This document shows positions 40,292 through 52,121 of a stretch of DNA of 64,000 nt, in pieces (the stretch's first letter is position 1; each line of letters begins with the position of its first letter). The translations under genes and the position numbers were made by a program. The DNA is from Caecitellus pseudoparvulus (Eukaryota > Protista > Bigyra: Bicosoecida): positions 558,001 to 622,000 of the forward strand of contig CBFFRQ010000013.1 of assembly GCA_965644315.1 (NCBI GenBank), read 5' to 3'. Below the pieces are notes generated by a model, which made no database searches, was not told the origin of the DNA, and saw only the letters and a list, made by a program, of their open reading frames with translations.

Positions 40292-43200
40292 CTAGTCTCC
40301 CTCCTCTTCCTCGCACAGCCGCGCAGCAAGTTCCTCGGCGACCTTCGACGCAGTCCAGCGTTCCGCAGGGTCGGCCGCAGTGCAGTTGTGCACAAGGGGC
40401 AAGACCCACTCAGGAGCATCACAGTCTTCCGGGTACTCCAACTTCCAACCCTCCTGGAAGACGTTGTAGTACTTGGCGCTGGGAATGCTTTGCGTGGGAA
40501 TGTTGATGCGGCGGTGAGCATCCCGTGGAGCGAACAACTCGAAAATGAGCACTCCCAGTGAGAAAACATCAGCAGGGTATGAATAGGGATCGCCGTACGC
40601 CACCTCGGGGGCTTTATACCCCATAGTTCCAATCTCAGTCGTTGCAAAGTGCCCAGCGTCTCCCTCCAACACGCGAGAGGTGCCCAAGTCACCCAACTTC
40701 GCCCTGAGTCGGCCCCGTCCCGGGCCAAGCAGCACATTGTGTGACTTGATGTCGCGATGCATCCAATGGTGCCTGTGCAAGTGTGCGACACCTTCGGCAC
40801 AGTCGCAGGCCAGGGCCAGGCGTTGCTTTGTGTCCAGACGCTCAGGGTCCCGCAGCGCACTGAAAACCGTACCTTGCGGCATCAACTCGTATACTATGGC
40901 CAAACCAGGGTATGTACAGGCTCCGATGAGTCGAACGACGTTCTCATGCGGAGGCAGCGCCCTGAAGGCTGCGATTTCAGTCTTGAAATCTGCGAGGAGC
41001 TTTGGTGGCGGCTGTGCGGCAATGTAGTTGAAGCGCTTGACAGCCACCTCCACACCAGGGTCTTCGATAAAGCGTGCCCCACTAGGGGCCAGTCCTTGCT
41101 CTCGGCCGTCGCCACCCTCGCCACTGGCTGCAGCTGCCACAGCCGAGGCAGGCACCGTTGCCTCCTCTGCGGCCGGGGTGACCCACAGTGCCCGATACAC
41201 GGTGGCAGTCTTCCCAGACCCCAGCTCGTTCTTTAGGTGCAGTTCGTTCATGTGCAGTTCTAGGTAGCTCTCTTCTTCCTCAATTTGCGCTGCTTTAGCG
41301 GACAGAGTGGATGCCACCTCTACAGCATCGCCGGCGCTCAAGCTATCGTCGCCGTCAAGCGATGACAGAGCCTCGCTCATCGCGCTGTCATCGCGAGATG
41401 CAGAATCCAGCGCGTCCGTCCAGACCGCTGCAGGCGTCCGTTTCAACTTGGCCCTCCCTCGAGCAAGGGCTGCTGCAAAAGAGCTCGGGGCCTGTCGCAA
41501 AGGTCCCCTTGGTTTCACGTCTTGCTCTTCAAGTGCCGTGCCAGCCTTTGGGACACTGCTTTCGCGAACAGGGGTCTTTCGCAAATGCCCCTTCTTCAGC
41601 TTCTTGACTGCAGACAAAATGTTCTTGTGCTGCGTCCGCATTGCCTCCCTCCGCATGGCTTCAGCTCGCTGCACGTCTTGTTCTCGAGCCTCTTGCACGC
41701 TGCTGATAACAGCTGACATCGTCTCTGACGCAGACTGCTGCCTTCGAAGGGCCCCTGCCCGTGGACTACTTGGTGCAGGACCTGCTGAAGACTCAATTGC
41801 GGATACAAGCACTCGAGGAGTCGAAGAAGGGGGCGACTGCATCGCTGCAGCTACGGGCGATCCTGGCGTGGCCATGTGCTGCACCGCAGGAAAAGCCACT
41901 GGCAGCTCCTCGACATGTTTGCTAGAGGATCTGCGTACTAGAAGACCCCCGTGGGTGTCAGCAGGAGTGGGCAGCAGGTGTGCAACACTTTCATCCACAA
42001 CCTGAACAAACAACGTGTCGCCTTGCTGGGCAAAGTCAACAACGCTCAGTTCATCGTCTGTTACTTCCACAACCAGATCACTGGGACCTTGGGTTGGTGG
42101 CGCGTGGGGGTTGTGCTTGGACTCGGCATGCCAATCCCCGCCAGCAGTTTGAGGGGACGTAAGTACTGAAGTCACCGTCGCCCTGCGAGCAGCATGTCGA
42201 GTATCATCGGAACTCTTCGCGGCAGAGGACCTGGCTGCAGGTCCACCTGACGCTTGGAGGGGCAATGCACTACTGCTGTGGAATCTCCGCAAGGTGAAAA
42301 TGCGTTGACTTGCGGGAGGGATGGACAGCTGTTGCTGGATGTCACGGCGAAGTACCCCAAGTGTGTACCCTTCCGGCACCTCCAGTTGCACACGTCGCAC
42401 CCAAAGCGCTGAAGCAGCGCTTCCCACGCTGTCCCCCCGCTGCAGCCCTTTCGCTGAATCGAGAAGGGCTGCAGCTGGGATCACTTCCAGAGACACTGTC
42501 AAATTGTGCGAGTTCATCACTGGCTTGATACTGGAAAGCACCTCCTTCACTGTCAGCTCTGCCAGAGAGCCGATTGTTAAGTGCACATGGTGTGGAAAGA
42601 ATGAAGACACCGCACGTCGATGGTGGAGCATCGTGCTCACTGACGCCGACGGGGGGTTCCAAGTGATCAACACAAACGCGGCCGTGGCGTCTTTCTTGCT
42701 TGCATAAGTGCTACGAGCCTCTGGGGTAGGGCCTGCTCGTAAGGACTTTGACGCTGCACGGCTTGCAGCCAGAGCCGTGTGCCGTCGCCGTTTGAGGGGC
42801 TCAGATTCCTGCCGAAGGTGTGCTCCCTGCCGCGTCACGTCAGCCGGGGGAGTCGGCTGCACACGGCGGTTGAACCGGAAGTACATGTACACTGGATCAT
42901 CTACATCCTCCCTCGCGAAGGGAAATACCCCTGTTGTCCGCAGTGGGTCTGGCATCAGCGCCGTCAAGGCATCAGCACCAGAGGCAAGCAGCTGCAAAGA
43001 GTTGCCCTCTCTTCCACCGAGCGAGCCCCCTAGCCCAACCACCATCCAATTGATGCAGGAGGTGTGCTTGTGAATGGCGTTGAAGGCATCTTGAACAGCT
43101 GAGTCAGATGTGCCCAAGCTACCTCGAGGAAGCCGGAGACTCCCTCTGCTGCGGCCGCCCCTGCGAGCTTCAGGCGCCGCGGCGTTCGCTGCGGCAGCGG

Positions 43201-44039
43201 CAGTGACAGGCGGGGGAGGGGCCACACGGGTAGTTCGCGAGCTTGCAGCTCCACCGCTTTCTTCATCACGGCATGCCAGGCGGGACTTTACTTCCTGCAC
43301 GGCACCACCTTGTGCGACCAGCTGTGAGCCAACTTTGTCTTGTTGGTGGGTGTGCTTCTCCAGCCAAGCTTCCTGCACCTTCCTCGGAGATATCTCCTCC
43401 ACCGCATGGGTGGTCCAACAATGCGAAATCGAGCACGAATGGGCTGCAGCCGACAATGCAGTCCGTACAGCCAAGCCCCTTGTCATGGCTTGCACAGATG
43501 GTCCACCTCCTACCTGCGCAGGACGGAGGCAAGTGGCCTCTTGCGTAGAGCTTGGATCAAGCCACTTCAAGCCTGCTCGCGCACGTAGGTCACAAGTCCT
43601 CGAATACAACCAGGTCCACGGAGAGACCCTGGCGGTGTCAGCACTTGCAACAGGACTGCGAGTCCGGAACAGAGATTGCAGTGCTTGCCAACGGCGGAGG
43701 GCCTCCAGCGCCAGCAGCACTTACCGTGCTGGACATCGCCAGGGATAATACTGCCTTGTACTTCAGATAGGGCACCAGAAGATGCTTGAATGTCAAGTTT
43801 TCCCACCTGTGGCTTGCAGCAGAGGTTCATTCAACCGAAGGGTGTCCAGGCAGCGTTGCGGTGCTGCGGAGAATGCAGCTGTGAGGGGGCGCACCTCAGG
43901 ACCGCCAATAACTGCGAAAGCATGCGAAGGAGGCTCAGTTGCACCGGTGAAACACGACCCACTGAGCTTACTTACTTGCGAACCCTTCTCCACTCCCTAT
44001 TCTCTCAATTGCGGCACGTAGTACGTGCTCAGCGTCCAT
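40292..44039 (-). CDS. TKL-type protein kinase with two N-terminal ADF-H (coactosin-like) domains, a ubiquitin-like domain and two WH2 motifs
   Basis: Exons 44039-43976, 43911-43895, 43806-43725, 43655-43585 and 43513-40292; all introns GT-AG and phase-compatible (about 1,151 aa). Kinase motifs LGSGKTATVY, VAVK, HRDIKSHNVLL, DLG, GTMGYKAPE, DVFSLG. Confidence 0.85.
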
Positions 44040-44596
44040 GCCAAGAGGTGATCACCACGCCTTGTGCGAGGACCTCGTATGGCAGCTTTCAACGTCCCCC
44101 GAAACTGGGCCACGTGCCAACTTGCAGCATCACATGCTCTTCATGGACGCTTTTCACCTGGTGTGACATTTGCCAGGAGTAGGTTGGAGTTTGACAAGGC
44201 CCAGGCAGTGCACCTTGCATTGTGAGCCTCAAGGCAGGAGCGGCAGACACCATGATTCATTTTACACTCATCACCTGTTCCAGTACGCCCCCGTGTAGCC
44301 CGCGCGAGTGGTGGCTTGCCGCAGTCTTCTTGAGCCTGTGCAGCACACGCCTCAGCTCTGCACCACAGTTCGTTGGGCCGCACCTTTCGATTTTCGGGGA
44401 ATCTTTCGAAGCGGCAAGCGCCCCTCCAACCAGTGACCGAGAAGTCTTATACAGATTCTCGTTCCTTGTACGTGAAAGGAAACGAGGCGCTGCAGTGCGC
44501 CATTGTTCCTGCCGACACAAGAAGTGCGGCTTTTGCACCAACCAACTCGCAAGCGCACCCCCCCCAATACGTGGCGCAGCGACGAACCGCGGCACC

Positions 44597-46318
44597 ATGT
44601 CTCTATTTGGACCAGGAGGCTCGAGTGGCGGGACCAGTGGTGGTCTGTTGGGTGCTGGCGGTGGCGGTAGCCTGCTGGGCGGAGGCACATCAGCGCCAGC
44701 ACCGGCGCCTGCAGCAGGGGGTAGCCTGCTGGGCGGGGGCACATCGGCACCGGCACCGGCGCCTGCAGCAGGTGGTGGTCTGTTGGGTGCTGGCGGTGGC
44801 GGTAGCCTGCTGGGCGGAGGCACATCGGCGCCGGTGCTGGCGCCTGCAGCAGGGGGCAGCCTGCTGGGCGGGGGCACATCGGCACCGGCACCGGCGCCTG
44901 CAGCAGGTGGTGGTCTGTTGGGTGCTGGCGGTGGCGGTAGCCTGCTGGGCGGAGGCACATCAGCGCCAGCACCGGCGCCTGCAGCAGGTGGTGGTCTGTT
45001 GGGTGCTGGCGGTGGCGGTAGCCTGCTGGGCGGAGGCACATCAGCGCCAGCACCGGCGCCTGCAGCAGGGGGCAGCCTGCTGGGCGGGGGCACATCGGCA
45101 CCGGCACCGGCGCCTGCAGCAGGTGGTGGTCTCTTGGGCGCAGGCACATCAGCGCCAGCACCGGCGCCTGCAGCAGGGGGCAGCCTGCTGGGCGGGGGCA
45201 CATCGGCACCGGCACCGGCGCCTGCAGCAGGTGGTGGTCTGTTGGGTGCTGGCGGTGGCGGTAGCCTGCTGGGCGGAGGCACATCAGCGCCAGCACCGGC
45301 GCCTGCAGCAGGGGGTAGCCTGCTGGGCGGAGGCACATCAGCGCCAGCACCGGCGCCTGCAGCAGGGGGTAGCCTGCTGGGCGGGGGCACATCAGCGCCA
45401 GCACCGGCGCCTGCAGCAGGGGGTAGCCTGCTGGGCGGGGGCACATCGGCACCGGCACCGGCGCCTGCAGCAGGGGGCAGCCTGCTGGGCGGAGGCACAT
45501 CGGCACCGGCACCGGCGCCTGCAGCAGGGGGCAGCCTGCTGGGCGGGGGCACATCGGCACCGGCACCGGCGCCTGCAGCAGGGGGCAGCCTGCTGGGCGG
45601 GGGCACATCGGCACCGGCACCGGCGCCTGCAGCAGGGGGCGGATTGTTGGCACAGGCCCAAGCAGGAGGCACATCTGCCAATGGTGGCACTGCTGTTGGG
45701 GCACCTGAGGTTGGCCAAGCCCCGAGTATCTCAAGCCAGCGTGTGTCTGAACTCTTCAGGCGTTGGAGCAGTCAGCTGGAGGAGCACAAGTCCACGTTCG
45801 TGAGCCAAGCCGAGCAAATTGCTGGATGGGATGCAGACATGCGCAGCCACCACAAGGCCCTGCTTTCTTTGGCATCGGAAGTGCACGAGCTTCAAGACGA
45901 AGAGTCCAAGCAAGACCAGCGCTTGGAGGCAGTATCCTCACACTTGGACGATATTGACCAGAGCTTGGACATTTTGCGACAGAACGTGTCCGACCTGATG
46001 CGGCAGTCCGGGAATCGGGAGGGGGCTTTGTCCATGCGTTCAGCTGATTCGGCTCGCACTCACTACTATCAGCTGGCAGGCGAAGTATCTTCCCAGCTGC
46101 ATGATGCAGAGCAGCAGCTGGAGGTGCTGACCAGCCAAATGGCACAACTGGGTCAAGCTCAGAGCCAAGGTGCAACAGAAGCGATCAGGAGGACCGTCGA
46201 AGCGCACATGCGCACCATGCAGTGGATCGACGACACGGTAGGGGTGCTCAACGCTGAGGCTGACGCTGTCGGCCTGCAGCTTCAGCAGTTTGGCGTGGGT
46301 GGCAGCCGTTCTCAGTGA
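44597..46318 (+). CDS. NUP62: Nucleoporin Nup62/Nsp1 homologue with LLG repeats instead of FG repeats
   Basis: Nsp1_C-like coiled coil (VSELFRRWSSQLEEHKSTFVSQAEQIAGWD...ADSARTHYYQLA...EAHMRTMQWID); N-terminal MSLFG followed by the repeat domain. Confidence 0.82.
   Translation: MSLFGPGGSSGGTSGGLLGAGGGGSLLGGGTSAPAPAPAAGGSLLGGGTSAPAPAPAAGGGLLGAGGGGSLLGGGTSAPVLAPAAGGSLLGGGTSAPAPAPAAGGGLLGAGGGGSLLGGGTSAPAPAPAAGGGLLGAGGGGSLLGGGTSAPAPAPAAGGSLLGGGTSAPAPAPAAGGGLLGAGTSAPAPAPAAGGSLLGGGTSAPAPAPAAGGGLLGAGGGGSLLGGGTSAPAPAPAAGGSLLGGGTSAPAPAPAAGGSLLGGGTSAPAPAPAAGGSLLGGGTSAPAPAPAAGGSLLGGGTSAPAPAPAAGGSLLGGGTSAPAPAPAAGGSLLGGGTSAPAPAPAAGGGLLAQAQAGGTSANGGTAVGAPEVGQAPSISSQRVSELFRRWSSQLEEHKSTFVSQAEQIAGWDADMRSHHKALLSLASEVHELQDEESKQDQRLEAVSSHLDDIDQSLDILRQNVSDLMRQSGNREGALSMRSADSARTHYYQLAGEVSSQLHDAEQQLEVLTSQMAQLGQAQSQGATEAIRRTVEAHMRTMQWIDDTVGVLNAEADAVGLQLQQFGVGGSRSQ
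44638..45650 (+). repeat. Coding tandem repeat: 54-bp unit (GGSLLGGGTSAPAPAPAA) with optional 27-bp unit (GGLLGAGGG)
   Basis: Near-identical nucleotide repeats encoding 21 LLG motifs. Confidence 0.95.
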
Positions 46319-46886
46319 GAGTCGGGCGCCCCCAATGCCACCAAAAATGAAACGGCAACACGTCACGAGTGCGGACTCTTTTACGGACTTGCATGCTTAT
46401 TCTGCAGCTATTTCCTTGAGGATCGCGTGTTCCCTGCGCATTCAACTTACGTGCCACATAAAGCCTCTCCAGCACGCTCAAGCCTTCGACTACCTTGAGA
46501 ATTCTCACCGAGACCAGGGCATTTCCTGCAGCTAATTAAGATTCTACGTTGTCTGACACGTTGTCTCTCGACGACACCCTTTCGATTCGTGCCAGGGCCC
46601 GGGGTGCTGGCAAGAGAAGTGGGGGTTTCGGGCTGAAACGCAAGCTGCAGCCATGCATGCTCGACGCGGGCGCCTGAGAGAGCAAGGGAAGGGCAAGCCA
46701 ACTGGCACGTCTAAATCCAAGACTGGGTGTAGTACACGTCCGTTTGGGGATACACCAGGCTTGCAAAGGGGAGCAGCAGGTGGTGTTCTTCTCACGCAAC
46801 TTGGAGCGGATCAGCCAAGCCAGACAGCAAAGCCTGCCAAGGCTACATGGGGGGCTGCAAAGGCGAGTTCCACAGGAAGTCTGGGT

Positions 46887-49800
46887 ATGGGTGGGAAGGC
46901 AAGAGTGAAGAAGTCTCTGAAAGCTGTTCAGGCGGCTCAGGCCAGCGCAGGTGCGCCGAAACCTCAGCAGCCCGGATCACGACGACTTGCAAGGCCATCA
47001 GTGAAGGCTGCGTCGACCACTCCCTCTGTGCCGGTTCCCGCTCAGCGCTTCCGTGGCACTGTGAAGAGAATCATGGAGGCGAAAGGGTTCGGGTTCATTG
47101 ACCAGGAACTCGATGGCCCTGATATCTTTTTCCGCCTGTCTGACAGCATCGTGACCAACCTCCGTGAGGGTATGTTGGTTTCCTTCCAGGTGGTCACAGA
47201 AAGCTCTGGACGGCAGCGGGCGAGTGACATTCGACGAGCAGAGCGCTCTGCTCGGGCGATGACTTCCGCCGCGGGTCCTACGGCAGGTTCCGGCAGTAGA
47301 CACGCTGGACATTCCGGTGCCCGGCGCCGGCGTCGGCCAGATAGAACGTGTGGCCCAGCACTCTCGCTTGGCAGCGGGCCGAAAGGTGGCGCTGCATCTG
47401 TGGAGCCACCTACAACCACCTCAGGCCCAGCAGTAAAGCTTGAGCGTGATGAGGCCCCAGGTGGTGCATGGCTGTCGGGGGACGTGGTGACGTGCCTCAG
47501 GTCGGGGGAGGGGCTCATCAAGCCTCCAGGAAGCCGTGATGCGACAAGGCGTGCGTGGTTTTCATCAAGCATCGGTCGTTCTGTTGAGAATCTTGACACT
47601 GGCATGTCAGTTCAGTACCGCATCGTGCCGGGGCGAACGCGAACAGTCGGATCGAGGGAAGAGCTGTGCTACGTGGTGTCACACATGCGAGTTGCAGGGG
47701 ACGAGGAAGGAGAGCCCCCCGCCGGCAACGCGGCAATTGGGCGTGTTTTACAGCGGTTGAGTAAGGGATTCAACCAAGAAAAGCTAGCCATGACCGAGGC
47801 ACCTCCACCTCCGCATGCTAAGGCCGGCATGGGCGATGCGAAGGCTGCTTCCTTGTGCAAACTGCGGGACGGCGATGTCACTGCCGCCGAAGCCCTGCTG
47901 GCAAGCATCATCGACGATCCAGACAAGGCAGTGCTGGAGCGCTCCAACTTGGGCGGTCTGATGAACAGGCCAGACCTCCTTGCTGCTCCAAGCGTGCAGG
48001 ACAGCCTGCTGTGCTTGCTCGCGACGAAGGAGGCTCGCGGTCGCGTGGAGTCCAGGTGCGCGCATGTGTACGACCAACTGAAGCTATCTGCATTCTTTTT
48101 AGATCCTTCGCATTTGCGAGCTCATGTCGCCGCATTCGGCTTACGGCCAGTCCCAGATGACGCTTCATTGCATCCTGCCGATGAGCCAGCGACAAGGTGC
48201 GGTAAGGTGCTTCACCACATTGCTGCTGACTCAACCGTTAGAGTAGCGAATATCATGCCTCTCATTGTGGCGTTGCGAGGTTTTGTGCGCTGCATGGTTC
48301 CTGGACCCAGCAAAGCACTCTTGCAAGCGGTTTCAGCTGCCTCAGCACGTCTCGAGCGAAGGACTGGCACTCCCTTGTCCCCCCTGACCGCACCAGTTTC
48401 GGGTGAAGCCCCCCCTTCCATTTCCTTGACACAAGCCCAGCCGCAACTTGAGGCAATACCCCATGCAGGCTCAGTCGGGGAGGTGGTGCAGCCCACCGCC
48501 GACGGATTTCGACAAGCCGCCTTGGCATGGGCCCGTGTTGCGTTGCCGTGCTTGCCCAGCGGCACGCCTAATGACCCGCTGTGGGACCCTGCTACCGACT
48601 TTAGGTCGCTGTCTGTGTTTCCTAGCGCAGCAGAGGTCTTGACTTCTGAGCAGCCACCACTCACGGCGCTGAAGGTTCAGGGAGCATACGACAGCCCGCA
48701 AGAGTACTTGGACGCACACTTCAGACTTTTGCGGGAGGACTGCGTGGCGCCTCTGCGCGCCGGTATTGCTGTTTACCTGAACGACAAAGCGCGAGAGGTG
48801 ATCGTCCGGGCGCAGTACAAGTACGCCAAGGCACACTCCCTTCCATTGCACCAGCTGCCCCCGCCTCCGCCTCCGCTGCCGCCCAGTCGAGATGTGAATG
48901 TGTATCCCCACGTCAAGTTGGTTGGGCTTGTGCCCTCCTTTTCAAAGCTTGTGTACCGCATTCAGCTTCCGGTTCAGGCAGCTACAGCTGATATTGATTG
49001 GCATCGCTCAAAGCGTCTCATGTACGGTAGCCTCCTTCTGCTCTCGGCGAATGACTTTGGTTTTTGCCCTCTGCCTGGTCCGGACGGCGGTGCAGTCAGC
49101 CAGGCCACCCTCCTTTGGGCAACCGTGCAGAACAGGGACCCAGACTTGATGTCGTCTCGGCGCCAGCTGGACATCGCATTCCCGGATGGGTACGAGCCTC
49201 GCTTGCACACCCTGCTGCAACGGTGCGTGCAGGAGGCTGGAGGTGATGCAGAAGAGGCGGAGTCACTCCCAGAACCTACAGCGCTGCACTTCACTGTTGT
49301 GGAAAGCGCGGCGACATACTTTGAGGCGTACCGGCACACCCTTCGTGCCTTGCAGTGTGTAGATGTTGATGCGTTCGGCACGAATACCCTGTTTGATGGG
49401 CTCCTACGTCCACCTCGTGTTGTCCTGCCCCCAGCCTACCTGACACCTCACCTGAGCTACCCAGAGCGCTGCTCGTGGGCTCATGCCGCGGCTGCCGCTC
49501 TTCAGCCTGCAAGCGCTACCATTCAGACTGGGGCTGGCAGTGTTCGCCCGGAAGCCTGGCAGCCGCTCAGCGGGGCACCGGACGCGTACCCGCACCCGCC
49601 ACCGGCCAACCCATTGCTGGCTCTCAAGTTTCCCGACGCATACCGGTTCCCAAGCCTTGTACCACAGCTGAAGGAACAGACTGGTCAGCATTGGCTTCGT
49701 GTGCTGCGGAGCAAATGGCCACTTGCCCCTGATGGCGAGGCTGAAAGCGGCCCAGGCAAGGCACCAGTGTCCCTGGACGCCTCCCAACTGTCAGCCTTCC

Positions 49801-52121
49801 AACAGTCGCTGACGCGCGAATTGGCTCTTGTGCAGGGCCCGCCAGGCACAGGTAAGACATTTGTAGGCTTGAAAGTTGTGCGTGCGCTCCTGGACAACGT
49901 TGTTCCGCGCTTGAGCGCCCGCCCCATCCTCGTCGTGTGCTTCACCAACCACGCGCTGGATCAGTTTATGTCTGGCATTCTTGAAGTAACGACGAACGTT
50001 GTGCGCATCGGCTCGCGATCCAAGGAAGCGCGGCTGGCTCCGTACAACCTGAAGGAGATGGTGGCCCAACGCTTGCAACAGCACCAAGCAGCGTCCCGGA
50101 CAGCTGCTCATGCAGCGGACGCGGCGGCGGCTGCCAAGTCCGTGCAAGCAGCCTCTGCAGCGGCTTCAGCAACCCTGATGCATGCCCACCGGCGCATCAA
50201 GAGGCAGCTCTGGGACTTGCGGGATCAGATCTTCGATGCAGCGGTTGGCATGGGCTCCCGTGTGATGAGTCGAGCTGACACAGCTGATGCTGCCCTGAGC
50301 TACCAGTTCAAATCACTGTGGGAGGGCTACACGCCACCTGATATTGACGGAGAGTCTGATGATGAAGCATTTATTGAGGCTCACGAAGAGGCAGAGTATG
50401 AGCACTTGGTTGAGTGGCTCGGCGCTGACCCTCTTGTGGTTACGGACGGCCCGGAGGGCGCAGAGGCAGCGGCTTCAGTCATCGACGGGCATCTGGCCAC
50501 CCAGGCAGCCGTAGAGGAGGCGAACGCGCGCCTTGAATCAACCGCCGCTGCTGTGCTGCGTCCCATGCTGCCACGCCAGCATGCAAAGAGCGCTCCGAGC
50601 CCCTTGCTTGCACTTGGCGGGGGTCTGCCGACATCTATGGCTGCTTCTGACCAGGACAGATTCGTTTTGTCGGCACTCGGGCCTGAGAATGCCCCGAGTG
50701 CGTCAGGGGCAACGGAAGATGACGATGAGGAGGAAGTGCAGCGCATTCAAGACGACCGCATCGTTGGAGACGCGGCACCCACAAGCCAGCCGGCAGCTGG
50801 CCAGCTACCATCCACTGCCAGAAGGCAGAGCGCACCGCAGGGGTTGCAGAGAAAAGAGCTCACTCCGGCACCGATTTTCCCGCCACCCCTTCCGCTGAAT
50901 GACAGGCGGGGCCTTGAGGTTGGGAGCGAGCGAGGCGCGGCCTCGAGACATGAACCGAAGGCGGCTGGAATCCGCATGCTGCCACCCCTGCAGCTCGAAG
51001 AGGTAGAAGACGTTTGGGCCCTGCCACTGCACGAGCGTCAGCGCCTTTACCGCGTTTGGGTGTGGAGGCGATTCCGTACGAGCCAGCATGCCTTGGCTGA
51101 CTTGTGCCAGCGTTTCGCAAGGGTACAGAAGCAGCTGGAGGCCTTCACCCAGAGCATCCAGCTTGATATTTTAGGAAGGGCTTCAGTGATTGGCATGACA
51201 ACCACCGCAACAGCCAAGTACCAGGGCCTGATTCACGCCTTGAAGCCGGAGGTTGTCATCGTGGAGGAGGCGGCAGAGGTGTTGGAGAGCCACTTGGTCA
51301 CGGCCCTCACTTCCGCGACCAAGCACATGGTGTTGATTGGAGACCACCAGCAGCTTCGACCAGGAACTGCCGTGCATGCATTGGCAAAGGATAAGCACCT
51401 AGAAGTGTCACTGTTTGAGCGCTTGGTGCTCAATGGAGTGCCTCATGTAACGCTGCAGCGTCAGCGCCGAATGCGGCCTGAGGTATCTCGGCTCATAACC
51501 CCCCTGTACCCTGCTTTGCGAGACCACCCAGTCGTCATGGGCTCTGGCCGGCCGCACGTTCAAGGAATGGCTGCTGACGTCTTCTTTTTTTCGCACACTT
51601 TCCGGGAGGACACATCCGGCTCTTCCAGCAGCAAGCGCAACACCAGGGAGGCTGTCATGGTCGCGAAGCTTGCGGGGTACTTGCTATCCCAAGGGCACAG
51701 CCCTGAGAGCATCACGGTGCTGGCTGCATACGTCGGGCAGCTGATGCTGCTGAAGCGCTTGCTCCAGGAAGCCGGAGCAGGGGCCGTGCGAGCGACGACG
51801 GTGGATAACTACCAGGGAGAAGAAGCCGACATCATTCTCCTGTCCCTCGTGCGCTCAAACAGCCACGGCGCTATCGGCTTCCTTGCCGAGGACAACCGTG
51901 CGTGTGTCGCACTGTCCCGTGCCAGGCGTGGCATGTACATGTTTGGGGACGGGGAGATGCTCAGAGCCCGATCGCGGTTTTGGGAGACTGTCATGGACAG
52001 GCTCACGGGCGCATCGCAGTGCGGGCCCTCCCTCCCCCTGGCCCCAGGCTGGGACGGAAACGCAGCTGAGGGTGGCGCACCACCCGTGTGGTGGGTCACT
52101 GACGCTTCCCACTTCCCATGA
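46887..52121 (+). CDS. ZNFX1/Hrr1-like SF1 (UPF1-like) RNA helicase with N-terminal cold-shock domain(s)
   Basis: CSD motif FRGTVKRIMEAKGFGFI...DIFF; ZNFX1-type motifs YLDAHFRLLREDCVAPLRAGI and DWHRSKRLMYGSLLLLS; QGPPGTGKT, VEEAAEVLE, IGDHQQLRP, TVDNYQGEE, VALSRAR. Start uncertain. Confidence 0.85.
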   Translation: MGGKARVKKSLKAVQAAQASAGAPKPQQPGSRRLARPSVKAASTTPSVPVPAQRFRGTVKRIMEAKGFGFIDQELDGPDIFFRLSDSIVTNLREGMLVSFQVVTESSGRQRASDIRRAERSARAMTSAAGPTAGSGSRHAGHSGARRRRRPDRTCGPALSLGSGPKGGAASVEPPTTTSGPAVKLERDEAPGGAWLSGDVVTCLRSGEGLIKPPGSRDATRRAWFSSSIGRSVENLDTGMSVQYRIVPGRTRTVGSREELCYVVSHMRVAGDEEGEPPAGNAAIGRVLQRLSKGFNQEKLAMTEAPPPPHAKAGMGDAKAASLCKLRDGDVTAAEALLASIIDDPDKAVLERSNLGGLMNRPDLLAAPSVQDSLLCLLATKEARGRVESRCAHVYDQLKLSAFFLDPSHLRAHVAAFGLRPVPDDASLHPADEPATRCGKVLHHIAADSTVRVANIMPLIVALRGFVRCMVPGPSKALLQAVSAASARLERRTGTPLSPLTAPVSGEAPPSISLTQAQPQLEAIPHAGSVGEVVQPTADGFRQAALAWARVALPCLPSGTPNDPLWDPATDFRSLSVFPSAAEVLTSEQPPLTALKVQGAYDSPQEYLDAHFRLLREDCVAPLRAGIAVYLNDKAREVIVRAQYKYAKAHSLPLHQLPPPPPPLPPSRDVNVYPHVKLVGLVPSFSKLVYRIQLPVQAATADIDWHRSKRLMYGSLLLLSANDFGFCPLPGPDGGAVSQATLLWATVQNRDPDLMSSRRQLDIAFPDGYEPRLHTLLQRCVQEAGGDAEEAESLPEPTALHFTVVESAATYFEAYRHTLRALQCVDVDAFGTNTLFDGLLRPPRVVLPPAYLTPHLSYPERCSWAHAAAAALQPASATIQTGAGSVRPEAWQPLSGAPDAYPHPPPANPLLALKFPDAYRFPSLVPQLKEQTGQHWLRVLRSKWPLAPDGEAESGPGKAPVSLDASQLSAFQQSLTRELALVQGPPGTGKTFVGLKVVRALLDNVVPRLSARPILVVCFTNHALDQFMSGILEVTTNVVRIGSRSKEARLAPYNLKEMVAQRLQQHQAASRTAAHAADAAAAAKSVQAASAAASATLMHAHRRIKRQLWDLRDQIFDAAVGMGSRVMSRADTADAALSYQFKSLWEGYTPPDIDGESDDEAFIEAHEEAEYEHLVEWLGADPLVVTDGPEGAEAAASVIDGHLATQAAVEEANARLESTAAAVLRPMLPRQHAKSAPSPLLALGGGLPTSMAASDQDRFVLSALGPENAPSASGATEDDDEEEVQRIQDDRIVGDAAPTSQPAAGQLPSTARRQSAPQGLQRKELTPAPIFPPPLPLNDRRGLEVGSERGAASRHEPKAAGIRMLPPLQLEEVEDVWALPLHERQRLYRVWVWRRFRTSQHALADLCQRFARVQKQLEAFTQSIQLDILGRASVIGMTTTATAKYQGLIHALKPEVVIVEEAAEVLESHLVTALTSATKHMVLIGDHQQLRPGTAVHALAKDKHLEVSLFERLVLNGVPHVTLQRQRRMRPEVSRLITPLYPALRDHPVVMGSGRPHVQGMAADVFFFSHTFREDTSGSSSSKRNTREAVMVAKLAGYLLSQGHSPESITVLAAYVGQLMLLKRLLQEAGAGAVRATTVDNYQGEEADIILLSLVRSNSHGAIGFLAEDNRACVALSRARRGMYMFGDGEMLRARSRFWETVMDRLTGASQCGPSLPLAPGWDGNAAEGGAPPVWWVTDASHFP

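Follow-up and report, generated by a model that had tools for sequence, protein, structure and literature searches.

The phenylalanine of FG repeats is treated as universal, gluing the nuclear pore barrier together and being gripped by transport receptors. In the described proteins closest to the one reported here, Nup62 of vertebrates and Nsp1 of yeast, the N-terminal repeat domain, disordered and of low complexity, carries FG or FxFG motifs (Phe 4-9%) and precedes a C-terminal anchor, and the spacers of the Nsp1 FxFG repeats are highly charged. For Nup98, Ng et al. 2023 (PMC9918544) listed the prevalence of GLFG and a density of one FG in every 12 residues among the features that all eukaryotic clades conserve, and argued that FG domains and receptors have co-evolved. 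The same authors found that a Phe-free phase, GLLG//L, built from a 52x12 Nup98 variant, forms and can be selective, excluding mCherry and admitting engineered FG-philic GFPs in vitro; thus, a leucine-based selective phase is physically possible. Plain GLLG 12-mers failed to phase-separate, extra spacer Leu being required, while shorter spacers gave more cohesion, and the GLLG//L phase kept out vertebrate importin-beta, transportin and Xpo1 almost entirely. A natural departure from GLFG is reported in Tetrahymena, where micronuclear Nup98 paralogues reportedly carry NIFN repeats linked to altered transport selectivity. We found no description of Leu/Met nuclear pore repeats in nature in the literature that could be searched.

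The window (the whole 64,000-nucleotide stretch of DNA that was analysed) contains a gene for which the initial annotation had proposed an almost FG-free Nup62, offering as alternatives a leucine-based permeability barrier or a functionally relaxed protein. Our analysis favors the first and contradicts the second. We consider it likely that the locus encodes a single, expressed and selectively maintained Nup62 orthologue that is a component of a cohesive barrier built on Leu and Met in one lineage, where the function is inferred from sequence without localisation, cohesion or receptor-binding data. The features of the locus are as follows.

44287..44467, + strand: 5' UTR exon, minimum extent seen (a run X15 contig lies on 44287-44467 and resumes at 44580)
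44468..44579, + strand: 5' UTR intron, 112 nt, GT..AG (44467 joined to 44580 in one metatranscriptomic contig; ends verified in the sequence)
44597..46318, + strand: coding sequence of the Nup62/Nsp1 orthologue, 573 aa plus stop, by translation
44597..45688, + strand: uncharged repeat domain rich in Gly/Ala/Pro/Leu, aa 1-364, with 21 LLG, 1 LLA and 1 FG, by motif and composition counts
44637..45640, + strand: tandem array of 54-bp (GGTSAPAPAPAAGGSLLG) and 27-bp (AGGGGSLLG) units, by Tandem Repeats Finder
45689..46315, + strand: C-terminal coiled-coil anchor domain, aa 365-573, by phmmer against the PDB
45719..46009, + strand: match to Pfam Nsp1_C (PF05064), aa 375-471, from the scan of the own genome (G000:C13:603719-604009)

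The protein belongs to the Nup62/Nsp1 family, as established by the Nsp1_C profile and by homology to solved structures. Nsp1_C scored 46.3 bits with the whole protein, 48.9 bits with the C-terminal piece and 51 bits in the own-genome scan, against a Pfam gathering cut-off of 24.1 bits, and a protein atlas confirmed the assignment again. When the anchor was searched against the PDB with phmmer, 7tdz, 5ijn, 5cws and 5c3l were matched at E values of 1e-14 to 4e-10. Residues 6-194 of the 209-residue anchor aligned to PDB chains, with homology extending over ~190 residues, the best match being 7tdz Nup62 (E 1e-14), with human p62 in 5ijn at 1.8e-14 and Chaetomium Nsp1 in 5cws at 2e-10. The anchor has 366 homologues in a library of 1.84 billion proteins.

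The repeat domain departs from these homologues in its motif. All 21 LLG motifs stand in a GLFG/SLFG context (15 SLLG and 6 GLLG), followed by a terminal GLLA, and consecutive motifs among these 22 are spaced by 18 residues in 15 cases, by 9 in five and by 14 in one. The codons at the Phe-equivalent position are CTG (15) and TTG (6). Only four Phe residues occur in the entire protein and only two FG dipeptides, MSLFG (aa 4-5) and QQFG (aa 565-566), the latter outside the repeat domain. The first ~364 residues are built from G, A, P, L, S and T with occasional Q, M, F, V and N, without a single D, E, K or R, in contrast to the Nsp1 spacers. The underlying array has periods of 54, 81 (54+27) and 135 bp, among others, with matches of 83-97%, and agreement reaches 97% among the last seven 54-bp units. 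Thus, the motif counts, the single FG of the repeat domain, the uncharged spacers, the CTG/TTG codons, the near-identity of the 54/27-bp units and the coiled-coil C-terminus, all read by the initial annotation from the letters alone, held, the motif count exactly and the C-terminus by the HMM check given above; it also stated correctly that one C-to-U edit would not turn these codons back into Phe.

Set beside 85 full-length homologues, the N-terminal domain is of typical length (364 aa; median 358), whereas its Phe content of 0.3% is the lowest (median 6.2%, minimum 1.2%), its content of charged residues (0%) is likewise the lowest, its Leu content is the second highest and its Gly content reaches 33% against a maximum of 23%. 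Its hydrophobic-carbon index of 54, compared with a median of 81, is the second lowest unless Ala and Pro are counted. None of the ~100 listed Nup62 homologues of at least 300 aa contains more than two LLG motifs, and the repeat pattern lies well outside what chance would produce. The Pfam Nucleoporin_FG family (PF13634) was not among the 25 families returned for the protein at E up to 1, and the locus is absent from the PF13634 matches of the genome. With one FG in 364 aa the domain does not meet the criterion of multiple FG motifs for FG nucleoporins, and it does meet that of charge-depleted, low-complexity spacers with regular hydrophobic motifs.

A profile search identified this locus as the sole Nsp1_C locus of the 30.6-Mb assembly, and no second Nup62, FG-rich or other, was found there. 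RNA libraries contain sequence from the gene, spliced at GT..AG in one contig; further contigs span 44923-45033 plus other repeat and C-terminal pieces, this evidence consisting of contigs assembled from environmental libraries and not of culture reads. The start codon is set by the spliced contig together with an upstream in-frame stop, after which no upstream ATG occurs in the spliced frame, the exons having been joined in silico and translated over a short length only to seek such an ATG. In a comparison with environmental contigs (query of 2,801 letters), all ten differences were synonymous, four of them within the repeats, from which we conclude that the gene is under purifying selection. 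Contigs from marine metagenomes and metatranscriptomes agree with both flanks and with internal units at ≥95% identity, and the composition of the locus is like that of the rest of the window. The initial annotation would have been refuted by a C-terminus other than Nsp1_C, or by a normal FG-rich Nup62 alongside an unexpressed copy at this locus; both possibilities were examined and neither was met.

Two relatives share the unusual repeat. Their anchor domains are 54-58% identical to that of the window and 74% identical to each other, and both keep the SLLGGGTSAPAPAPA repeat unit, the closest relative being a 187-aa gene call. Their repeats retain GG[SG]LLGGGTSAPAPAPA with synonymous codon changes in a unit that is a 17-mer and not an 18-mer, such that the units compared across the three taxa differ only synonymously or by a one-residue change in length. 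Decoding was examined by alignment of the actin of the genome: of 24 Leu codons, all but one of them CTG, 22 align to Leu, TTC aligns to Phe at 10 of 11 positions and ATG aligns to Met, with TTG not sampled. CTG is therefore decoded in the standard way, as Leu.

The initial annotation had asked whether other nucleoporins also use LG; the replacement proves to be genome-wide and to involve Met as well, which goes beyond what had been claimed. The Nup98-96 gene, identified by PF04096 (35-42 bits) and PF12110 (52 bits), retains the architecture of described Nup98 proteins, with repeats, a GLEBS-like ELRLEDY segment, further repeats, the autoproteolytic domain and Nup96, and its ~560-aa repeat domain is strongly depleted in charge. 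This domain nevertheless holds 30 GLMG and 19 GLLG motifs and no GLFG, spaced mostly by 7-10 residues as opposed to 12, and no GLFG paralogue of Nup98 was found in the genome. It differs in this from the Tetrahymena NIFN proteins, in which Phe is kept, only one of two nuclei is affected and GLFG paralogues are present. The partners of Nup62 in the channel trimer are Nup54/Nup57 and Nup58/Nup49, and for the former a Nup54-like gene (G000:C30) is a candidate, which carries 19 GLLG and no FG; its match to PF13874 (26.7 bits, E 6e-6) falls under the 30.5-bit Pfam cut-off, so the Nup54 assignment is only probable. For this gene and for importin-beta1, each exon of the spliced models was searched separately. 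Counted genome-wide with a two-motif DNA pattern, tandem G-L-x-G pairs (x being Leu, Met, Phe, Ile or Val) gave 217 hits compared with 29 for the control; when x in the first motif had to be Phe, the hits fell to 6 compared with 3. GLFG arrays are thus essentially absent from the genome, and the switch from Phe to Leu or Met extends over Nup62, Nup98-96, the Nup54-like gene and further repeat proteins. Residual FG persists in a protein of contig C68, where 9 SLFG alternate with 12 SLLG, and as a few motifs in proteins of contigs C40 and C18. Low-complexity repeats outside the pore retain Phe, for example as DPFG and GLFG, and the Phe content of other proteins is ordinary (2.2-4.8%).

The FG pockets of importin-beta and NTF2 had also been named as places to look. 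Importin-beta1 was missed by the IBN_N scan of the genome, which returned CAS, CRM1, transportin and three other karyopherins, and was located via PF25574. Its FG-pocket residues are changed at otherwise conserved positions: E214, a Glu in 10 of 10 homologues, is Q; I218, an Ile in all ten, is V; and Y255, aromatic in all ten, is H. Tyr and Glu occupy the I263 and T175 positions, respectively, and F217 is variable among the ten homologues anyway. These comparisons rest on alignments of ~25% identity to ten homologues of mostly unknown taxonomy, the HEAT-5 exon, which has no PDB match alone, was placed solely by multiple alignment, and no binding data are available. A search with PF02136 gave no NTF2 candidate in the genome, a search that a small, intron-split gene would escape.

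In the mechanism that we propose, the coiled coil would anchor Nup62 in the central channel, a location inferred by homology, and its ~22 Leu-Leu-Gly motifs would stand where other eukaryotes present Phe-Gly. The Leu/Met motifs may supply the inter-repeat cohesion and receptor contacts that Phe gives elsewhere, both of which are inferred, as is any phase behavior. In Nup98 the weaker hydrophobicity would seemingly be offset by the denser motifs (7-10 residues versus one per 12), and the transport receptors may have co-adapted. The engineered GLLG//L construct resembles these domains in placing Leu for Phe in a GLFG-type motif between uncharged spacers; it is laboratory-made, whereas the motifs of this genome arose in nature, use Met as well, are denser in Nup98 and occur alongside the receptors of the organism itself. 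A bolder reading, toward which we lean with some reserve, is that a clade of free-living protists from the sea rebuilt the selective phase of its pore on Leu-Gly and Met-Gly while its receptors co-evolved, with Y255 and E214, elsewhere invariant, no longer present in importin-beta1. Several points limit the inference of a Leu/Met barrier: no experiment bears on pore location, on LG/MG cohesion or on receptor binding; the residual FG motifs of the C68, C40 and C18 proteins could possibly carry receptor binding; plain GLLG 12-mers do not phase-separate (PMC9918544); and the hydrophobic-carbon index of the Nup62 domain is low unless Ala and Pro are counted.

The strongest competitor of this barrier is tolerated drift, in which GC-biased mutation would have changed TTY (Phe) to codons for Leu where the repeats are under weak constraint, leaving the LG and MG domains as inert, flexible filler and selective transport dependent on the FG that remains in other nucleoporins. 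In its favor are the ~60% G+C of the genome, the persistence of FG elsewhere, such as the nine SLFG of the C68 protein, the low hydrophobicity index of the Nup62 domain and the in vitro failure of plain GLLG repeats (PMC9918544). We nevertheless regard it as unlikely. The LL repeat peptide is conserved in three taxa while the folded domain fell to 54-58% identity, Nup98 uses Met, whose ATG codon is not favored by GC pressure, and it packs its motifs more tightly than the reported one per 12, which resembles compensation. Phe is moreover kept in other low-complexity repeats (DPFG, GLFG, non-pore proteins), and Nup62 still shows the absence of charge that is typical of cohesive domains. A relaxed, decaying Nup62 copy with functionless repeats would fit the single FG of the repeat domain, but it is largely refuted and remains very improbable, as the gene is the only Nup62, has an intact reading frame, occurs in RNA with its 5' UTR spliced and shows only synonymous differences from environmental contigs, relatives keep the repeat, and Nup98 and the Nup54-like gene show the switch too.

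That Phe is really present, by recoding of CTG, TTG and ATG or by editing of the mRNA, is all but ruled out: the actin alignment supports standard CTG, TTC and ATG (TTG aside), three unrelated codons would all need recoding, and the Leu codons of the genome recur in RNA-library contigs from the repeat and C-terminal parts, which differ only synonymously. No evidence for recoding or editing to Phe was found. Neither recoding nor decay therefore explains the repeats, given a single-copy gene found in RNA with synonymous differences, relatives that keep the unit and CTG read as Leu. An assembly artefact or contamination, whether a collapsed or mis-joined repeat or foreign DNA, draws some support from short-read contigs that break within the array and from a repeat copy number that is not independently verified. 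We hold it to be highly improbable, since independent contigs match flanks and internal units at ≥95%, the composition is uniform with the window, and nucleoporin genes on other contigs show similar motif chemistry.

If the bolder reading is correct, no earlier case of a nuclear pore barrier without aromatic residues would be known from nature. The engineered GLLG//L phase would then have a natural counterpart, and the universality stated for GLFG in Nup98 would have a counter-example. Should Phe indeed have been swapped for Leu or Met in Nup62, Nup98 and the probable Nup54, aromaticity would not be required in vivo. Natural sequences with their matched native receptors would allow tests of cohesion against hydrophobicity and motif spacing, and the lineage would help to ask how FG pockets co-evolve with their ligands and why evolution almost never leaves Phe. 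Motif-based searches for FG nucleoporins would miss the pore proteins of such lineages.

The genome gave no match to the LHC family, which weakly suggests a heterotroph. Long minus-strand and off-frame open reading frames across the Nup62 array were rejected as genes, being mirror images of the repeats.

The open reading frame at window positions 44597-46318 (+) is intact over 573 codons and encodes a real, expressed and conserved Nup62 in which Leu-Leu-Gly replaces Phe-Gly. By script count the repeat domain contains 21 LLG motifs (15 SLLG and 6 GLLG) plus a terminal GLLA, and its only FG is that of MSLFG at residues 4-5; the second FG of the protein lies close to the C-terminus, at residues 565-566. 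The Leu codon at the Phe-equivalent site is CTG in 15 motifs and TTG in 6. Residues 1-364 carry no charge and are nearly all Gly, Ala, Pro, Leu, Ser and Thr, and Tandem Repeats Finder resolved 54-bp and 27+54-bp periodicities, with a 97% match across the final seven 54-bp units. The motif counts, lone repeat-domain FG, CTG/TTG codons and 54/27-bp units claimed by the initial annotation thus all held, as did its Nsp1/Nup62 coiled coil: Pfam Nsp1_C matches residues 375-471 at 46.3 bits (cut-off 24.1), and residues 6-194 of the C-terminal 209 match solved Nup62/Nsp1 chains (Xenopus 7tdz, human 5ijn, Chaetomium 5cws) with E values of 1e-14 to 2e-10. The same C-terminus has 366 protein matches in a 1.84-billion-protein library. 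The genome assembly (G000; 30.6 Mb, 215 contigs) holds one Nsp1_C locus, this one, and a search of it with the protein's own C-terminus found only itself and no second copy; we therefore regard the gene as the sole Nup62 orthologue of the organism, without the canonical paralogue that the initial annotation had left possible. Its neighbors are as follows.

Window 40295-43720, minus strand: 5' neighbor, a protein of 1142 aa whose kinase domain is C-terminal
Window 46653-52118, plus strand: 3' neighbor, a ZNFX1/AAA_11/AAA_12 helicase of 1822 aa that carries a cold-shock domain at its N-terminal end

The array is also overlapped by long ORFs (460-477 aa) in other frames and on the minus strand (44257-45803); we rejected these as genes, since they are the repeat translated in other frames.

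A contig from a marine metatranscriptomic library covers 44287-44467 and resumes at 44580; the 112 nt that it leaves out begin with GT and end with AG. Such splicing cannot derive from DNA, which shows that the gene is transcribed, and its transcript processed, under natural conditions. The spliced frame meets a stop ahead of the ATG at 44597 with no ATG in between, which places the intron in the 5' UTR and upholds the start codon proposed earlier. Contigs in two RNA-Seq metatranscriptomes cover 44923-45033, 45669-46073 and 46082-46269; as assembled contigs, they yield neither expression level nor transcript ends. All 10 differences between the window and environmental contigs over Nup62 are synonymous (4 in the repeats, 6 in the coiled coil), and because none falls on a motif Leu codon the contigs give no hint of editing.

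Most of the ~100 listed Nup62 homologues of ≥300 aa have 8-29 FG, and none has more than 2 LLG. Compared with the 85 homologues whose N-domain exceeds 200 aa, the Nup62 N-domain is lowest in Phe (0.3%; median 6.2%, minimum 1.2%), lowest in charged residues (0%) and second highest in Leu (12.6%), the only homologue above it resembling an off-frame gene call. It is also less hydrophobic than theirs (index 54, median 81), except when the abundant Ala and Pro are included. Seven other proteins of the genome have ordinary Phe contents of 2.2-4.8%.

CTG decoding, which the initial annotation had questioned, was assessed by alignment of the organism's actin to a solved actin. The aligned stretch has 24 Leu codons (CTG in 23 cases), of which 22 align with Leu and the remaining two with Met and Thr; TTC aligns with Phe in 10 of 11 cases, and ATG with Met. 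CTG is thus read as Leu; TTG is absent from the actin stretch and so lies outside this sample. Two environmental relatives, L018 (a 958-bp JGI contig encoding protein P0001) and L022 (part of a JGI contig of 11 kb), share 58% and 54% coiled-coil identity with the window Nup62, respectively, and 74% with each other. Upstream of the coiled coil both carry GG[SG]LLGGGTSAPAPAPA-type repeats, whose DNA differs from that of the window at synonymous sites and in unit length (17-mer versus 18-mer) with the peptide retained. The repeat peptide is therefore more conserved than the folded domain, which argues for selection on the repeat together with concerted evolution inside each array.

The motif change extends across the genome, and that in Nup62 is part of a lineage-wide loss of Phe from central nucleoporin repeats. 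The loci concerned, with other repeat proteins of the genome, are these.

L017:2898-8783 (contig C20), minus strand: Nup98-96, with two repeat blocks, autoproteolytic domain and Nup96 domain
L019:2022-2963 and L019:1240-2070 (C30), minus strand: Nup54-like gene, a GLLG exon and a helical exon in another frame matching PF13874
L042:1-1962 (C18:91208-93169), plus strand: open frame of at least 654 aa without Pfam match, ending in ten GGLLGGGSSGTGGGVS repeats
L014 (C68:822001-832000), minus strand: 1442-aa open frame with a C-terminal array
L013 (C64:110001-119000), minus strand: 780-aa open frame with eight SVDPFGAPAPAPAPAA and several ADPFGSLGSASP repeats
L016 (C43:126001-136000), plus strand: HEAT protein in which 5 LFG motifs (GLFG, SLFG or PLFG) form a short patch

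Nup98-96 (PF04096 35-42 bits; Nup96, PF12110, 52 bits) may be the strongest single example of Phe loss. Its repeat domain of ~560 aa holds 30 LMG (GLMG), 19 LLG (GLLG) and no LFG (GLFG), with few charged residues and motifs mostly 7-10 residues apart; a GLEBS-like ELRLEDY segment separates the two blocks. The Nup54-like gene, whose PF13874 match of 26.7 bits falls short of the cut-off, has one exon with 19 GLLG and no FG, and an intron or frame change near L019 2022-2070. The possibility, raised earlier, that Nup98 and Nup54 also use LG is thereby borne out, for Nup54 with that reservation. Additional GGLLGG arrays occur at protein ends on C18 and C40, and the C68 protein, whose N-terminal region we take by eye, without Pfam, to be lamin-tail-like, strictly alternates 12 SLLG and 9 SLFG in a 38-residue unit. 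A Nucleoporin_FG Pfam scan of the genome gave a top single match of only 28.7 bits. In a DNA pattern census of two G-L-x-G motifs 6-36 nt apart (x = Leu, Met, Phe, Ile or Val), we counted 217 pairs versus 29 in the reversed-pattern control; with Phe at x of the first motif, 6 versus 3. Phe is not shunned by repeats overall: the C64 DPFG-repeat protein shows that it is tolerated within Ala/Pro-rich repeats (as a guess, its motifs are of endocytic DPF type and not pore repeats), and the patch in the C43 protein, which we take to be ECM29-like without a Pfam run, is among the few genuine LFG clusters.

An engineered precedent exists in Nup98 (Ng et al. 2023, PMC9918544). There, changing GLFG to GLLG in 12-mer repeats ends condensation, restoring hydrophobicity (GLLG//L) returns a dense phase, and cohesion rises with shorter spacers. 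The Phe-free GLLG//L phase keeps mCherry out and lets engineered FG-philic GFPs in, but essentially excludes vertebrate importin-β, transportin and Xpo1 and lowers NTF2 entry 50-fold, which the authors read as co-evolution of FG domain and receptor pocket. According to their list of conserved features, Nup98 repeat domains of all eukaryotic clades are ~500-700 residues long and charge-depleted, carry one FG every 12 residues and have GLFG as a prevalent motif. The Caecitellus Nup98 retains the length and charge depletion but has Met/Leu for Phe and denser motifs; a rough count inferred from composition gives ~100 hydrophobic side-chain carbons per 100 residues versus ~92 for an idealised GLFG 12-mer. 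From those results and the composition of Nup98 and Nup62 we propose that an aliphatic, Leu/Met-based cohesive meshwork would replace the Phe-based one, to which Nup62 would contribute a long, Gly-rich, dileucine-studded domain. We consider this barrier likely, with cohesion, pore location and receptor binding all inferred.

Karyopherins in the genome include CRM1, transportin and CAS. The importin-β1 orthologue is intron-split (L066, C94:93346-97473; PF25574 120.9 bits; PDB matches to Kap95 and human importin-β). We mapped the FxFG-site residues listed by Bednenko et al. 2003 (PMC2172684) by alignment to human 1f59 and to homologues, of which 10 were used over the main exon and 8 over the HEAT-5 exon.

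FxFG-site residues of importin-β1 (human residue: Caecitellus; homologues)
L174: L; L 8/8
T175: E; T 7/8
I178: V; I or V
E214: Q; E 10/10
F217: I; variable (Y, M or V)
I218: V; I 10/10
C223: F; C 8/10
E224: K; E 6/10
Y255: H; aromatic 10/10
I263: Y; L or I 9/10

According to Bednenko et al. (PMC2172684), the Gly of FxFG forms a hydrogen bond with E214 and the first Phe of the motif is stacked on by Y255; both Y255A and E214A weaken Nup62 binding. Loss of E214 and of the aromatic at Y255 is consistent with possible co-adaptation; given ~25% identity and a small, mostly untyped homologue sample, this is a lead and not proof. NTF2 docks on Nup62-type repeats. A six-frame scan of the genome found no NTF2-domain (PF02136) candidate, although a small intron-split gene could escape it.

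The most serious alternative is neutral GC-driven drift, with the residual FG motifs doing the work. We consider it unlikely, as it leaves unexplained the Met in the motifs, the conservation of the repeat peptide and the denser Nup98 spacing. A relaxed or decaying Nup62, the other reading offered by the initial annotation, fails: decay is contradicted by the repeat peptide kept in L018 and L022 and by the wholly synonymous contig differences, making it very unlikely. The leucine-based barrier is the reading retained, its function inferred. Recoding or mRNA editing that restores Phe is contradicted by the actin decoding and by contigs unchanged at motif Leu codons; it is practically ruled out as the source of the motif Leu, with the caveat that actin does not sample TTG. 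That the array is an assembly artefact is contradicted by direct results and highly improbable.

The literature searched, mostly without subscription journals, held no natural Phe-free, FG-less, GLLG/GLMG or LG/MG nucleoporin, only engineering papers from the Görlich laboratory; a prior description of natural Leu/Met nucleoporin repeats remains possible. No light-harvesting (LHC, PF00504) candidate appeared in a six-frame scan of the genome, and on that absence the organism is probably heterotrophic. Marine metagenomes contain 58-63% of the window's sampled words, from which we infer that it is marine.
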